This document shows, piece after piece, positions 2,871-29,186 of a stretch of DNA of 64,000 bases. Both the position numbers and the translations under genes were made by a program. This DNA comes from Amoeboaphelidium protococcarum X5 (lineage: Eukaryota; Fungi; Aphelidiomycota), in the NCBI GenBank assembly GCA_023515725.1, contig JALDTO010000212.1, positions 186,001 through 250,000 of the forward strand. The letters run 5' to 3'. Position 1 is the first letter of the stretch, and each line of letters opens with the position of its first letter. The notes under the pieces were generated by a model. It ran no database searches, had not been told where the DNA came from, and was given only the letters and a program-made list of their open reading frames with translations.

Positions 2871-5534
2871 TCACTGTGTAACTTTTACAAATACATCCTC
2901 CAGTCCTGTTCTTTTGACTGAAATCTTGGTGATTAGCTTTAACTTATCTCCGCCTTGAAGCTATTTAAGCAACTCGTAAAACTAATCATCTTCTTGCGGA
3001 ACATTAATAACAGCCAGATATTAAGTCTCCAAATGCTGTTAAGTAAAAGATTCCATGGATGCAGCAGGACAAAACCTTTGTATAATCCCAATCAGATGGA
3101 GTTTGAATTCAGATATACTTTGATCTAAATGAGAGCAATCTAGCAAAAGCTCCAAATTGAGAGCACCAAATCGAGATTTCAGACTTAATGAAGTTCCACA
3201 ACATTCGATTTGGCCATTCTTCATGATCAGCACTTTATCAGATAAGACATCACACTCTTCCATAGAGTGAGTGATCAATAAAATAAGTCGATTCTGCTTC
3301 ATCTCTTGAATAAGATTCCACAAATCGCGTCGAATATATGGATCAACACCAGATGTGCACTCATCCAATATGACCACTTTGGCATGGAGGAACGCCATCG
3401 CTGCACATAGACGCCTCTTCATTCCACCAGAGAATTGATATACTGGCCGATATCGCTATTGCCATAAATTCACAGAATGCAGAAGAAACTCAATCTACCG
3501 AGATGCTTAGACAGGATCCATCATCTTGATCTTACTCAACATGATCATATGCTCCAGGGGAGTCAGCTCCTTGAAGAGAATATCTTGTTGAGAGCATACA
3601 CCCAAAATCTTGCGGATATCAAAACTCTGCTTTGACAATAGCTTTCTATCAATAAGAGCATCACCATAAGTAGACTTTATCAATCCTACCAGCATATTGA
3701 CAGTGGTAGATTTACCGGCTCCATTTCTGCCTAATATAGCAAGTATTTCACCTTAATCTGCAGAGAACCAAATCTAATTCACAGCTTTGAATTCTTTCTT
3801 GTTATTACTATTTAGCAATGATGCAGAAGATTTGTACACTTTAGTTAAACCATAAACTTACAAGAGCGGCGCGTTATCAGTCAATACTTGATCAGATTCA
3901 ATAAGATCAGCAACGTCCTGCTCCATCTTGACAACATCCATACGCAACGATGACTATTATGTTCCACTTTATTAAATATTCAAAAATCTCAATAATTTAT
4001 GGAAATCAAACTTCTTTACGTTGAACCATTTATTGTTCCAAAATCTGGGTAAAAATGGTTCATACCAGTACAATCCTTCCGAGTCTGCATTAGACAATAT
4101 TTAATCCAAGTAGACAGCCAACACTCCAAACATCACAAAATTAACAGCGAGCATAAGGACTGAGTACTCCAGAGTTGGCATTGGAATCTACTTAATTACT
4201 GGAGGATAAACTGAATCATTGACAGTCTCATTATGATAACGCACACGCCAAAGATCAGACCAGTGATATCGAGCACTCTCTGACGCTTACAACCTGGTAC
4301 TAATCTCACAAAATCCCTCAGCCAAATTGTAAGATGGAAACAGAAGCGACAGTATTACCGGGACAATGCTATTAACAGTATCAGGATTATTTAATGCATC
4401 TTTAGCCTGAGTCTTTCCCACGATGGCCACAATCAGCAGACCGAGTATGAAATGCAGCATACCAATGTTCAAAGAACTCTTGGCACGTTAAATAAACACG
4501 TAATTTAATAGAGCAAATGCAGTCAGAGCCACAGAGAATACGCCAAATAACAGAAATATAACACCAGCATTTACATTGACAAAGAATTTCAAACGTAACG
4601 CGAATCCAGTCAGATAAAGCACTGCGACAGCAATCATGGATACGATGGTGCCCCATACGACAACAGAGAAGTAATACGCGGTATCAACCATTCCATTCAA
4701 TCGCAGATACTAAACCAATCTAGTATCCTTCTCACTGCACACATTGTAAAGCAGAATAATGAACTAGAACATGATGCCACAGTAAAAGAAGACTGGTCCA
4801 AGATCATCAGATGCAGATTCTCCCGACCTGAAGCCCAATTTAGGATATGCCTTCTTGTTAAAATGGAGCATCTCGCGCGCTTATTACGCAGAGATCTAAT
4901 CAGTGACACTTATATCACTATGTCCAACAAGCGTTAACGACTATCGACTTAAACGGCGATTATAATGAAATCTGAATATAGCTTAATCTACAGCTATGTG
5001 TAATTCATTTCTGTTCTCTGGCTTCCTTGCAGGACTGAAAATCATGATCGGATCCAGAGTGGAGTTGTACATGATAGTGTACTTGTAACCAGTGTCAACA
5101 TCATCATTAAATATAATGGCATTAGTGGTAGTATTAGGATGCTGCTTGATATAATCAACAAGACTATCTCTATCAGGCATCTACTCAAACTCTTCCACCG
5201 GGAGTCCACTCTACTCAATGACGTACTGCATCAGAGTGGTGTAATCGTCACGAGGTGGGATGACATACCTCACAGTCTTGCACGGCACTCCATTCCACAG
5301 TCTACATCTCTAAATGGATCCAAATTCTTGTATAGGAGGATTAATATCGCGAATGAGAGGATTGTATGGATTATCGCGAATATCTTTGGGCAGAAGGTCA
5401 ACAAAGTACAACAGGGACACAAATACTAATGGACACAGCAATTACATAACAGTCAATTTCCATCTTCTCTTTGTGAATAATACATTTTTATACATTAACG
5501 CATTAAAATGCGCCCAAAATCTACCAATGCTCAT
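2871..5534 (-). CDS. ABCA-subfamily half-size ABC transporter (TMD+NBD)
   Basis: 887-aa intronless table-6 ORF joining five track fragments. Walker A GRNGAGKST, signature SGGMKRRL, ILDECTSGVDP, THSMEEC, terminal LEDVF. Confidence 0.93.
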
Positions 5535-23041: not shown

Positions 23042-23848
23042 TCACTTGGAAGTATTCAGAGGCGGACCAAAGAATGTTACTCCAACAGGCTTACCGATGA
23101 CATCGTTCAGCTTTTGCATGTAATCTTCCAGCTTGAGCCAGCCTTCATTCGCATGGAACTCTTCGACAAAATCAGCACGTCTGATGAGTAGAGTAGCTGG
23201 AAAATAACCAGCCTCGTACCATTCCATCATCTCCAGGCCAGAGAACGGACCTTGAATATCACCCTGAGGATCTTTGTACTACCACAAAGTCTATGGCAGA
23301 GCATTGATTGGAATATCGTGCGTTGGCAAGGCATTAACCATCTCGTTCATGGTGAAAGTACCATTAGCGAAAGTACCACCCATAGCACCAACGTCCCACG
23401 CATTGTTATCCACGTACTTGTTGTATTATTGACGAGAATTACCGCGACCACCGCCTCTGCCACCACGGCCTCTTCCGCCACGTCCACCACGACCGCGATT
23501 ACCTCTCACTTGCTGAAATCCCCCATTGCGTGCCCCAGCAGCTTCTCTTCTCTCTGCCTGATTGGCGCGCTTAGTAGCCAAATCGCTATTCCACCCACCA
23601 CTCTCACGGATAGTCTGCTCTTCTTCAGTCAGCTCTTTGCCATGTACAACATCCTGACTTTGCTCGGCCACCACCACCTTGTAGTCTGCAGCCTTCTTTG
23701 CCAACACCTAATCAGTGACATTACCATCAGCATCGGTACCGCTGTCCTCAGCCAGCTTAAAGTAGTCTGGGCATTCTACCTTCTTGAAAAGAGAGTACAT
23801 GAAATCTAGGGAGTAAAATTTAGTTTCGCTCTATTCTGCCATTGTCAT
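23042..23848 (-). CDS. GYF-domain protein with RGG-rich region (Smy2/GIGYF-like)
   Basis: [28 protein letters not shown] plus RGG repeats. 268-aa ORF. Confidence 0.9.
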
Positions 23849-23933: not shown

Positions 23934-24035
23934 ACATTCTAACAGCTTTACTGTATTTTTCACAAATTAAGCGAATTAGGGACAGCAACGGATTTTCACC
24001 GCCGATCAGACTGTTGCGCGCGTAGCCTGGACTGA
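23934..24035 (-). ncRNA. Predicted Fanzor omegaRNA (scaffold through the TIR plus ~15-nt flank-derived guide)
   Basis: 85 nt between the Fanzor stop and the TIR end. Stems GAUCAG/CUGAUC and CGGCGG-UGAAAAU-CCGUUG (G-U pairs). Position matches described Fanzor1 omegaRNAs. Boundaries inferred. Confidence 0.6.
23951..23978 (+). repeat. Terminal inverted repeat (Fanzor 3' side)
   Basis: CTGTATTTTTCACAAATTAAGCGAATTA. Confidence 0.9.
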
Positions 24036-26101
24036 TCATTATAAAGGGCGAGCAGGATCGTATCGAAATGGAACCGGCCTTTCACCACCGTCACCATTTC
24101 TTGCCAGAAAGATGTAGCGAATGTTTCGTGCCGCATTCACATCACGGTGCCAGATAGCTAAGCAATTGTTATTTGGACAATGCTTAATTCTCCATACTCG
24201 TGATTGAACAAGCTCACACTCACAATTACTACATCTTTGACTGGTTCGATACTCAGGGACCAAGCGGACTCTGCAGCGTTTCTTCAGCTCATAAAACAGC
24301 CGCTTGTTAGGAGAGTCGCAGGATACCCAGGAGAAGCAGTGTCAAAGTTGCCAGCGCCATATGCTATGATGGTGTAATGGTCAAACTAACCATCTTGGCG
24401 GAGAGTTAACATACGCGCCAAATTGTCATAGGCCCTTTGACGCTTGGAGAATAGCTTTCTCCTCAGCTTTCACCGCATCTCAGGACGGTAGAAGCTAGTG
24501 AATGCATCTCTATGTTGCAGTACATACCGCAAATGTTAGATGATTCCCAGAAACAAAGTTGATTTAGCGGAAGGAATGTGGGCCATGGCATTAAAGATCT
24601 CTGGAGCTCTTTCATTCCATTCAGCCCGCTTCTTTTCACCTAAATTTTCTCCATTCTCTTCACGCCATCTGGTAGTCGTGTAAACCAGCTCATGCTTTCC
24701 ATTTGCAAACGGCGTCTGCTCGGTTGGAACATCTGGGATTCGGTCATCAGGACCACAAGAAGCAGCCAGAAGCACGCCACGATTGACGTCAATCCCGATA
24801 ACGCGAGTTTCATGTTTACATCCAGTTCTTGCTATCCGGTACCATCGAAAGCAAACCCGCAGCGGCTAGCAGGAGGGGCAGGATACGCAGGACGTAAAAC
24901 GGAATCAGAACTGCCAACACCATCGGATGTTATGGAGTAGCCAAAACGCCTTCTCTGATTTCTATTATTGGAGACCTTGTTTAAATTGAAACAATGTGAC
25001 CACAAAGCCTGAGCATTCATCTGACGAACGTCTGGCAGATTAGCAGCAACATAAATCTCCTTCAGTACATTGGAGGTGATCAGGATGTGCTTCTGCGTAA
25101 ATCCATTTAAAGGCAACAACGCGTAAACGTTAAGCAGAGGACCTTCATTGTTCAGCAGATACTCCTCCTGATACATTTCATGGTTATTTTCAAATGTACG
25201 AAGGATACGCCACATGGATTTCAGATACAGATGCCAGTTGTTCTGAAGACTAGGCTTGTCCATTGGAAGATTGCAAAGGATGTACTAACGCGCGCGCGTC
25301 TCGTAATAGTCCGGGTAATATACCACTAATTCTGCGATACCACAATTATCAATGATTTCTGCAGGATAAGGAGGCATTTCTTCAATATCTTCAGGCGGAT
25401 CTATCAAGGCGAAGACGTAAATAGCAAGAGTATTAAAATCATCTTCTTCCAAACAGAAGGCGAGATGCTTTCGAAACTTGTGGCGCAGCTATTGTTTCAG
25501 CCTTGATGGCAAATTTGTGGTTATATGTCTAGCGCAATCGTCATTGTGAGCTGAAGCCAAGGTAGTAACCATGTTTGAGTAGCCTCTCCTGTCACACCAA
25601 AACAAGTCAACCGGACGAGGAGGAACATAGTGTGCTTCAATATACTCGTTTAAAGCCGCCCAGTTGCAGGTATTACGATTAAGAAGATCACGCCGCCTAG
25701 GATTAGCAATCAAAGAGCTGAAGAAGTTACACATCTATCCATTTGCGCCAAAGCGGATGTCTGGCATTGGAGTGTCAGGATTGTATACCAAATGATTAAG
25801 CACGAAGGACAGAAGAAGTCTGCCTGCCTCTACTTTGAGATCAGTACAACGCGAAACCAAATCGCCGATCTCTTGCTTTACCGCGTCAATTTACAGCCAC
25901 TTAGGCTCCAGCCACAGGTATCCCCAAGTTTTCTTGTGGTTTGGCAGCATTTCGTGCACGAGGGACATAATTGGGACACAGTTTACTGGATGAGCGCTTG
26001 TGATCGTCACGACCACATGCTTTACAATGTTCTTCTCGTTGACGTTTACGCGGCGGTTAGGCAGCACCGATATCTGCTACCTCTATAGGGGGATCTGCCA
26101 T
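24036..26101 (-). pseudogene. Fanzor1 (eukaryotic TnpB-family RuvC RNA-guided nuclease), disrupted
   Basis: N-terminal CKACGRDDHKRSSSKLC, YALLP, ITSDGV, RuvC-I VIGID (24788), IIAYGAGNF, RuvC-II VPEYRTSQ (24252), Zn finger CSNC...CPNNNC, RuvC-III HRDVNAARNI (24141). Frameshifts at ~25920, ~24815 and ~24315, TGA at 24470. Confidence 0.92.
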
Positions 26102-26145
26102 TTCTGATTTTATTGAAGAAATGAAGTGAAACCTGTCCGATTGTG

Positions 26146-26153
26146 CTTTTATA
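26146..26153 (-). promoter_or_regulatory. TATA box upstream of Fanzor ATG
   Basis: TATAAAAG about 45 nt upstream of ATG 26101. Confidence 0.4.
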
Positions 26154-26671
26154 GTCATAACCCCAATTTTTTGCTTGGCAGAAAATGGCTCGGACGAATC
26201 TCAAAATGTAGTCCCGCTTTGCCAAATCTAATTTTAACCGCTAAGGTCAAGTACTGTTGTTAAGCAAATTAACGTTAAGATCTTGACACAAGATATAGAC
26301 AGCCGCTTAATTGAGAAGTGACCAATGCGTCTATGAAACATCTAATGAAGTTAATCATCGGTTGATCAATAAACTATTTTATATTTTGATCAAGCGCAAT
26401 ACATTTTGTTAAATTTATATTACGCATTATTATACGTCGGCTCACGCTTACATGGTAGTTTTTGGTCGTGCGCAATTATATAGCTACACATCAAGGCTGA
26501 ATGTAGAGAGGTGTCATAGTAAAAGAGCCTTCTCATTATGGCCAACCTTCTACTTTGAATTGGGATGCCAACGCAAGTTTAAACATGCTCCTGATTGAAG
26601 AGTAATTTGCAGGGAGTGAGAAACGCCCACAGTGGAATTGACGCGGTTGAAGGCGCGCCTGACCTTTTCTG

Positions 26672-26699
26672 TAATTCGCTTAAAATGTGAAAAATACTG
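26672..26699 (-). repeat. Terminal inverted repeat (Fanzor 5' side)
   Basis: Minus strand CAGTATTTTTCACATTTTAAGCGAATTA, preceded by TA. Confidence 0.9.
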
Positions 26700-26821
26700 T
26701 AATATTCTCGCGCGAATGAAGAAAAACTCGAAAAGTCCACTCAACTGAAGGAGAACCAAGATAGTGCATGAAAACTGTATATTTTTTAATTTCAAACGGC
26801 GCATTAAAGTAAAAGTCAGGT

Positions 26822-27938
26822 TCAAACAAGCATCGGATTCTTCTTGCCAGGATCCACGCCAAAAACTTGAGCACCCTCCATCCTTTCAGCGAGGTTCTAA
26901 GCGTCAGTGAGATAGACAGCATCATACAGCTTCCCAAACACGTCGGTTTATCTCTTACTTTCCATATCCCTCTTCATATTAGCGTATTGCCACGGCCTAT
27001 CCTTGACGTTGACAGCAATCGAACAGCCGCATCCATCAGAAAGCAGCGTGACTTCGTCCACATCAGCCGCAATTTTCCAAAGTCTGGTTTTCTTCAGATT
27101 GATGGTTAATTATGGACTTCACGGAACACGCAGAGAGAGAGAGAGATTAGATGCCAGAGTAGTACAAGACGTTCTTGTCCACTTACTCATATCGTGGGAC
27201 ATCAGCACCCATAGGAAAGATGCTGAAGGAGGGCACCTCAAGCCATTTTGTCGCATCAGATTCCTCCTAATGATCTTGATCATCGGCATCGTGTTCCGCA
27301 GATAATGAAACTTTAACCTAGCGATCCAAAAGCAGCACCTACGGGTGATCCAACTGAAGCGCCTCGCTTGGATTGTCAAATTTAAGAGCATTCAGCAGCG
27401 CAATGTAGAGTGTCAGCTTGCGCCCAGTGATACCAAGTGGCTCTAGCTAGGCCTGTAAGATGAGTTTCTGATACACAAACAGCGTAGTAGTCAGATGCCA
27501 TCTTACAGTTTGCATAACGCGTCTAGCATCAAATTCATACAGGTTGGGATTGGGTCCAGCCAAAGACGCATGATGTGATTATTCCAGGACAGCAGGGCCT
27601 AACGCATCACCAAGTAACTGGGTGTGGAAACTTTGACGATCATGCGGAAACTATGGATTGCAGAGGAACTCAAGCATGGACGCTACGTATTCCTGGTGAG
27701 ACAGGTCGGGCAATCTTATGCCTTCTTCATGCCAAACATTGAGACAGATGTACAGGAGTCGTTAAGCCGAGGACAGAGAGGTGGAGCAGATTTTGATGTA
27801 GGCGATTAAGGCAGACTTATCGAAAGCATCAAGCTCTATCGCATTGTTGAGCTTTCATGCGTAATAAATATGCATGTTCATACCGACACACTTTTGATTT
27901 GTGAGCCTGGTCAGACCCATGCAGTATTCTGAAGCCAT
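26822..27938 (-). pseudogene. Second, divergent Fanzor1 fragment truncated just after RuvC-I
   Basis: LPDLS, FSIFPM, LLSDGCGCSI (27032), VFGVDPGKKN (26846-26860), then TGA. Also a TGA at 27855 and a frameshift near the (CT)n run at ~27135. Confidence 0.75.
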
Positions 27939-28605
27939 TTGTAACAAAGCGCCTGGGTTACCTCTTTTTGGTTCATTATTCGTTCAAAGGCCGCCTGACG
28001 TAAATCTTAGATTGTCGTTACTCTCTAAATTTACTAACAACAATCTAAGTACTTCTAAGTACTTGTTAAATCGCTGTTCATCATGGAAGACTTTGGATTT
28101 AAATATAGCATGGCATTATTTGCAAGTTTTAATCTAAGCCGATTTTTCAATGTTTGACAACAAACAATGGCAGCAATTTGTACACATTTTAACGTACCGC
28201 AAGCATAATAACGGTAGCCTTTTTACGCAAGTTGCTTCAGCATCGATTTGCAATACACTTTCTTGGTTCCGCGATAATCGACAATCTTGGGCGGAGGATG
28301 ATAGAACCAACTGGCGTCTGATCCACATTGTTGTGAATATATAGGTCTAAAAACTAATGGTGATCGATCACAACTTTCGTGAAGAACACGAACATTTTGT
28401 CAGCCTTATTATCAAGCATATCGCTAATAGTAGATGTCGAATAACGTGCATCGACGTGATACGTTAGGTAGAATGGATAACTAGGCCAGCAACATCAAAG
28501 GTCCGGACTGAGGGCGGTAAAAAGTTGGAATTGAAACGTGTGGCCGCGTTCTCCGATTTTTCCTAAAAAATTTGTGTGCTCATATACTGCTGTAAATTCA
28601 ATACA

Positions 28606-29186
28606 ATGGCTCAAGTAGATGAATTACCCACAGATGGAAGATAGGATGAGACTTTGGAGATTATTAAGAAGCAGAAGCGGATATTTACACATTCAATGCG
28701 CAAGGCGTGTTGGAAAAAGGTAATTATATGCGATGCAGCATATTTATTTACTACACACATGTAACAGTACAGTAGGCTCAGACAGTGATGGGAAGAGATC
28801 CTTAACGTTGGCGCTATGACGCTGCAGGGAACCTGGTGTGTCGTGCATTGACCAACTGTCCCGGGGTACTTTGTCATGAATTTGATCACATAGTGCCGTA
28901 CAGTAAAGGAGGCGCCACATCTGTGGAAAATTGTCAGATTCTGTAAACACGGGTGAATCGTCTTAAACGGGACTATGTGGATCAAGACCGCGATCTTCTT
29001 ACTCAGCACAGTATCAAACACTCATTTTCCGACTATGACATGGATATCATAGAGATTGCACTCTGGGGTGATGTCAAACGATAATTTCAAGGATTCCCGG
29101 ATATCATGCTCATGTGCGCCGTCAAGTCTGAAGACGTAAATACTGTGAAATGTGAAGACTATGTCAAACAATAAAAGTAGCTTTGA
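28606..29186 (+). CDS. HNH endonuclease, plant/algal-type family; intron 28720-28775
   Basis: RIFTHSMRKACWKK/AQTVMGRDPQRWRYDAAGNLV, LCHEFDHIVPYSKGGATSVENCQILQTRVNRLK, DIIEIALWGDV. Intact in table 6, absent from the ORF track. Confidence 0.9.

Follow-up and report, generated by a model that had tools for sequence, protein, structure and literature searches.

A TA-flanked Fanzor1 element in the aphelid Amoeboaphelidium protococcarum bounded by two outward-facing Fanzor 3' ends

In the genome of Amoeboaphelidium protococcarum X5 we observed a TA-flanked Fanzor1 element that is a composite of two outward-facing Fanzor 3' ends. It is situated in a 64,000-nucleotide stretch of contig JALDTO010000212.1 (positions 186,001 to 250,000, assembly GCA_023515725.1), referred to below as the window. 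With good confidence, we interpret it as a non-autonomous pogo-type (Tc1/mariner) transposon that has the Fanzor1 gene FzA as cargo, would have originated from the 3' ends of two elements, would be mobilised in trans, and whose FzA protein would cut empty sites. Fanzor1 genes in TA-flanked non-autonomous elements have been known since 2013; the new points are the two-3'-end build and the aphelid host. A literature search, with subscription papers and survey supplements outside its scope, found no paper pairing Fanzor with aphelids or with pogo.

The family is of interest as a complete young system readable from the genome, with an intact nuclease, a candidate RNA, a candidate TAM and a matching intact transposase. 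The host lineage adjoins fungi, and its genetic code hides FzA from standard-code scans. The two-3'-end build itself would be a route to new Fanzor transposons.

Anatomy of the element

The 28-bp TIRs abutting TA and the enclosed span of 2,749 bp were reproduced as given in a preliminary description of this DNA (Table 1). That description, however, took the ends for a plain 5'/3' TIR pair and the Fanzor gene for the only recognisable cargo. In fact, the element's last 160 bp on the right are the relic of another Fanzor, FzB, and the two termini are 3' ends from different Fanzor elements. At the DNA level the relic and the 3' end of full-length FzB are ~80% identical; the relic is collinear, on the opposite strand, with the last 40 codons of FzB, and has 55% protein identity to FzB residues 720-759. 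Since the collinearity includes both the last codons and the 3' end of FzB, the element has an outward-facing 3' end on either side.

FzB is a 759-aa Fanzor encoded at two loci that match only the right end of the element; its similarity to FzA is confined to the RuvC region, with ~24% identity there. A subfamily of longer copies (subfamily B, see below) keeps ~500 bp of FzB (residues 609-754), with frameshifts, a stop and the RuvC-II glutamate lost. We suggest that two pogo-Fanzor elements in divergent orientation contributed their 3' ends as the termini of a new transposon and that the FzB half would then have decayed, with 500 bp left in subfamily B and 160 bp in subfamily A. One could also suppose that a single ancestor had an ordinary TIR pair and that its 5' end acquired FzB sequence afterwards, through recombination or gene conversion. 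Chimeric Fanzor elements have been described and are common (PMC3627910), and the pogo group in question has related ends on either side. Nevertheless, the true 5' end of the autonomous element described below differs from the relic end, and the relic is collinear with the FzB coding sequence right up to the terminus. We therefore regard conversion as improbable; its end product would be the same as that of a composite birth, the route alone being different.

Table 1. Features of the element and its surroundings (window coordinates)
Feature	Position	Strand	Remarks
Inverted arms	23948-23978 / 26672-26702		31 nt, 90% complementary, TA on each
Transposon body	23951-26699		2,749 bp between the two TA
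Predicted guide segment (host flank past 3' TA)	23934-23948	-	Sequence differs in every copy
TA target-site duplication, FzA 3' end	23949-23950		TA in 11/11 scored FzA 3' ends
Left terminal repeat = FzA unit 3' end; terminal stem of predicted omegaRNA	23951-23978	-	
Predicted omegaRNA scaffold, 87 nt including TA	23949-24035	-	Conserved in 14 copies
Fanzor1 gene FzA, pseudogene in window copy	24036-26101	-	Intact copies 696 aa
FzA motifs in window	Knuckle 26026, SDG 24927, GIDVNRG 24796, AYG 24364, PEYRTS 24257, RDVNAA 24146		
FzA residues in intact copies			Catalytic D447, E625, D662; C4 finger C632/635/650/655; N-terminal zinc knuckle
AT-rich spacer upstream of FzA, putative promoter region	26102-26539		Common to all full-length copies
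Relic of FzB: RuvC-III codons, stop region, former omegaRNA/3' end, facing outwards	26540-26699	+	
Right terminal repeat = FzB 3' terminus	26672-26699	+	Last two bases altered (CA/AT/TT variants among copies)
TA duplication + AT, predicted TAM	26700-26703	-	Reads ATTA directly 5' of element in FzA sense
Decayed, internally deleted pogo-transposase + FzB copy, outside element	26775-28467	-	

The FzA protein and its copies

The genome is recoded, as the preliminary description had it: TAA and TAG encode Gln, long host ORFs are open only under TAR=Gln, and the NCBI annotation of the host agrees. Comparison with a natural copy whose frame is intact shows, in the window ORF (minus strand, 26101 to 24036), exactly the three frameshifts and one TGA reported earlier: deletions of 26 bp at codon 70 and of 1 bp at codon 439, an insertion of 2 bp at codon 605, and an in-frame TGA at codon 553. 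The window's own copy yields no functional protein. All motifs of the Fanzor series are in the places described, and the claim of a ~680-aa Fanzor1 stands in identity and is corrected in length to the 696 aa of the intact copies. Long minus-strand table-6 frames over the broken ORF (563 aa) were rejected as frameshift read-through, and the NCBI model MIR68_008181, which joins a Fanzor piece to a host GYF gene, is probably an artefact.

FzA uses TAA or TAG at 6 of 25 Gln codons, compared to 55% in two host genes (p 0.005), and the use of these codons in FzB equals the host level. Though the numbers are small, codon usage hints at a later arrival of FzA from a standard-code donor.

The Fanzor1 identity was borne out over the full length by the profile and structure comparisons with SpuFz1 that had been proposed. 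A single FzA sequence searched against PDB sequences gave only noise, so that a profile, built from 88 homologues, was required. It matched SpuFz1 (E 7e-55), GtFz1 (6e-46) and PpFz1 (6e-41), all at full length; its matches to Fanzor2 and TnpB were confined to the C-terminal finger (Fanzor2 E 2.5e-14). An AlphaFold model (pLDDT 94) had Fanzor1 structures as all of its top seven Foldseek matches (TM 0.51-0.63), followed by Cas12 and Fanzor2 at TM of 0.3 or below (Fanzor2 0.25). By sequence and modelled fold, with an expanded REC/WED, FzA is a Fanzor1 distinct from Fanzor2.

Intact FzA satisfies the Fanzor/TnpB motif D-X(125,275)-[TS][TS]-XX-C4 finger-X(5,50)-RD of Bao and Jurka (PMC3627910) with D447, T628-S629, C632/635/650/655 and R661-D662, and PF07282 scores above its cut-off. 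The rearranged RuvC-II glutamate, which in Fanzors stands six residues ahead of the zinc finger (PMC13565253, PMC10711439), is present as E625, six residues before C632. The TDG motif of the Fanzor1 WED domain (PMC10711439) has a conservative variant in FzA, SDG at 401-403, for which SpuFz1, GtFz1, PpFz1 and 69 of the 88 rows have TDG in the alignment. The N-terminal zinc knuckle is common within the FzA clade of this alignment. On the other hand, the DPG fingerprint at RuvC-I (PMC10711439) is missing, all FzA copies read having DVN. The GIDVN noted earlier is indeed unusual, with DVN in one of 88 aligned homologues, DPG in 69 and DPN in 7. We treat DPG as a fingerprint rather than a strict criterion because FzA keeps the catalytic D and SpuFz1 departs from it too (DPN); still, a residue pattern unique in the alignment counts against our interpretation. 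In a FastTree tree of unnamed homologues, built without named Fanzor1 references and with long branches, FzA is separated from its nearest relative by a branch of 0.9.

A search of the whole A. protococcarum assembly, as suggested in the preliminary description, returned 44 matches to the element and revealed intact copies. A multi-copy family with TA duplications is thereby confirmed. Both ends are preserved in about 12 copies, of which five belong to subfamily A (2.75 kb, the window copy included; ~95% identity), four to subfamily B (3.35 kb; 98.5-99.3%), one is internally deleted and two are split by later insertions. The four B copies have an uninterrupted 696-aa ORF with D447, E625 and D662; in the subfamily A copy L005 the ORF is open but bears D447E and a change in a finger Cys. 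At least seven GenBank entries of 696 aa, from two strains, are labelled hypothetical proteins. With natural intact copies in the genome and in GenBank, among them KAI3652982.1, the consensus resurrection considered earlier is not needed. A 301-aa stop-free piece used as query matched only the host's own copies. The dN/dS between subfamilies A and B is 0.15-0.19, which indicates purifying selection on the FzA protein during the spread of the family.

No family of short TIR-only derivatives (MITEs) was seen; the 21 end-pattern matches were mostly ends of Fanzor copies, and four weak end matches (L034, L035, L038, L040) look like fragments. Several copies bear other insertions: L042 (2662-7231) is broken by a copia-like retrotransposon, L043 (1-9336) carries an 8.8-kb insertion, and L048 (770-1830) has a 1-kb element with inverted ends inside the 5' terminal repeat. 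Copy L004 is placed between two parts of an AAA-ATPase-like gene (774-1472, 4372-5256), with no open frame over the joint of this gene. The host genome has 36 TnpB/Fanzor finger-domain matches; ~19 of them are outside the FzA family, which implies several other Fanzor families. In Amoeboaphelidium occidentale, the 1,366-aa gene model KAI3659768.1 (P0052) consists of two Fanzor1-like halves in tandem.

Transposase, insertion sites and the predicted guide RNA

In the host genome FzB is located behind a DDE_1 transposase, within a gapped region. The sister assembly GCA_023515745.1 has the same locus whole, with an intact 391-aa HTH_Tnp_Tc5 + DDE_1 ORF (pogo, DD35D) followed by FzB. This complete element is preceded by ATTA at its 5' end and has its 3' end in common with the FzA element. 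The preliminary description had proposed a search for a transposase with the same TIRs. Such sharing was found in part: both ends of the FzA element match the pogo + FzB 3' end, but the 5' end of the autonomous element matches only partly. Its own two ends share just the terminal five bases (CTGTA) and an inner TAAGC box, and the partial match counts against our interpretation. So does a second pogo family of four similar copies (C200:127296, C264:384976, C264:1515460, C264:1843207). Outside this genome, four relatives from the metagenomic FzA clade, including the closest one (42%), are encoded directly behind related pogo transposases, and one relative is enclosed by 32-bp TIRs of the same type. 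Judged from these sequences, the pogo DD35D transposase linked to intact FzB is the likely mobiliser, and it would move the FzA element in trans into TA, duplicating the TA.

The autonomous element begins ~40 bp downstream of a tRNA-Met gene (L055:4516-4625). Three repeats of pogo + FzB, 99-100% identical and lying around N gaps at L032:1721-9001, probably stem from misassembly of a single locus.

The decayed pogo + FzB neighbour, 75 bp from the element, has FzB pieces at 26828-27854 and transposase pieces at 27898-28467. It is present on both haplotypes and, being common to the homeologous contig, predates the insertion of FzA. A search for its 5' end was unsuccessful; position 28772 was rejected because it falls inside an HNH gene. 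This intron-containing nuclease gene (~28607-29150), probably of the host, is positioned head-to-head with the decayed copy and is also found on the homeolog.

Copy L010 interrupts a gene with two paralogues, in both of which exactly three bases separate the matches to its flanks, as a single TA predicts; this is the empty site that had been set as a test, and a joint with one TA restores a 315-codon frame. One paralogue of this gene is ~2.3 kb from a copy of the second pogo family. The TA duplication characteristic of Tc1/mariner elements is therefore seen at L010, and the window copy fits it only within 3 bp. The homeologous contig, which is without the window element, joins window positions 23952 and 26709 across two bases, and a public sequencing run shows the same skip at one-haplotype depth. 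The window insertion is, therefore, present on one haplotype only. Its empty site falls 3 bp short of what a clean single TA would leave, and the guide-side flank there is strongly diverged, too much so to match alone; both observations count against our interpretation.

We observed ATTA directly 5' of the element, in the FzA sense, at 11 of 12 sites in the assembly and at one site in the sister strain, with a further copy left unscored for its damaged 5' end. The motif is thus present at 12/13 sites on the 5' side compared to 1/13 on the 3' side (Fisher p 3e-5), while 10.5% of all TA in host DNA are part of ATTA. From this asymmetry we infer that ATTA is the TAM of FzA. Tc1/mariner enzymes prefer certain flanks around TA, and ATTA also precedes the autonomous pogo + FzB element. 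The bias could thus be the oriented target choice of the pogo transposase itself, with FzA carried as a passenger and its TAM free to agree or differ, an explanation we hold possible yet rather less than probable. Against it, the ATTA-side end is a former 3' end, natively followed by TAAG at both FzB sites seen, so that the bias appears to track the direction of the FzA gene and not the end sequence, albeit in a small sample. Agreement of TAM and target has also been reported for Fanzors (PMC10530073, PMC13565253).

Three hairpins, the last closed by TA, were predicted for the 87 nt that run from the FzA stop codon through TA. Known Fanzor1 omegaRNAs are derived from the 3' end, with three stems, the TIR and target-site duplication in the scaffold, and no pseudoknot (PMC10711439); Fanzor transcripts read 14-15 nt through into the flank (PMC13565253). 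When copies were compared, similarity was lost immediately beyond the 3' TA. In the window copy, the host GYF-domain gene (23045-23848) begins 100 bp past the FzA 3' end on the same strand, and the predicted guide would hence be drawn from its upstream region. However, the FzA 3' region folds no better than shuffled sequences (z ~0.1), which counts against our interpretation, and its consensus fold has no compensatory pairs or covariation. The native FzB 3' end also gives three hairpins (z -3.97), a fold lost in the relic FzB ends (z 0.2-0.7). The omegaRNA fold of FzA is a weakly supported prediction.

The weak RNA fold, the DVN in place of DPG or DPN and the long branch would all suit an FzA that is catalytically weak or dead and kept as an RNA-guided DNA-binding protein, with ATTA still its binding motif; it could, for example, protect empty sites or regulate the transposon. 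Conversely, the catalytic residues and the C4 finger are intact in four copies, SpuFz1 itself has DPN, and purifying selection is strong. We think such a binding-only role unlikely and retain an active nuclease as the preferred reading. Intact FzA would load an omegaRNA made of its own 3' end and ~15 nt of flank and cut at empty sites, in which ATTA stands 5' of the flank. Once the element has been excised, such a cut would make it more likely to be copied back, a model taken from PMC13565253.

Such restorative homing has been shown for bacterial TnpB/IscB and is unlisted for Fanzors in a 2026 review (PMC13565253). It could be tested directly in a genome like this one, where two haplotypes present both occupied and empty sites and the ATTA bias is one-sided. 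At the 5' end of copy L009 (4850-4870, window orientation), also seen as L047 (1800-1835), ATTA is followed by 9 nt identical to the copy's own 3' flank and by the element from about base 7. This 11-bp duplication in place of TA is common to both strains; it may have arisen when a cut empty site was repaired, or the insertion itself may have been aberrant. In the boldest reading, which we put forward as speculative, the family would preserve the traces of restorative homing that a Fanzor drove in a eukaryotic genome. Copies would survive only with ATTA 5' of FzA, empty homeologous sites would persist only where the target has changed, the L009/L047 end (ATTA + 9 nt of its own target) would be a repair intermediate of a Fanzor cut, and new mobile units would form from two omegaRNA-bearing 3' ends.

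Comparison with known systems

The predicted TAM of FzA, ATTA, differs from the CATA of SpuFz1. This protein is the best profile and fold match of FzA, with an identity of only ~15%. Its element SPu-1 of Spizellomyces punctatus (PMC3627910; PDB 8GKH, 9CEU-9CEZ) is likewise non-autonomous, with a single Fanzor1 ORF, ~30-bp TIRs and a TA duplication; its copies are 92-99% alike and several have intact ORFs (PMC3627910). Unlike SpuFz1, FzA has an N-terminal zinc knuckle and DVN instead of DPN at RuvC-I; unlike SPu-1, its element has a relic of a second Fanzor as its 5' end and a TAR=Gln code. GtFz1 and PpFz1 (PDB 9CER, 9CF0) also match FzA over the full length in profile and fold, at 12-13% identity.

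The Mariner-Fanzor1 elements PUl-1/PUl-4 and PGv-1 (PMC3627910) similarly combine an autonomous transposase with a Fanzor and have Fanzor-only partners with shared TIRs and TA duplications. Here, in contrast, the transposase is of pogo type (HTH_Tnp_Tc5 + DDE_1, DD35D), the published ones being taken as Mariner by description, and the Fanzor of the autonomous partner is another one, FzB.

The metagenomic pogo-Fanzor1 elements L051/P0011, L053/P0037, L058/P0039 and L059/P0177 encode proteins 34-42% identical to FzA. They have the gene order of pogo + FzB, transposase then Fanzor, and L058 has the same kind of TIR; they differ from the FzA element in a standard genetic code, an autonomous layout and DPG or DPN. 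The preliminary description could not place FzA in any described set. We find instead that it falls in a Fanzor1 clade of metagenomic proteins and that its layout is of the SPu-1/PUl-4 type, the pattern of a TA-flanked Fanzor1-only element with an autonomous Mariner-type partner (PMC3627910).
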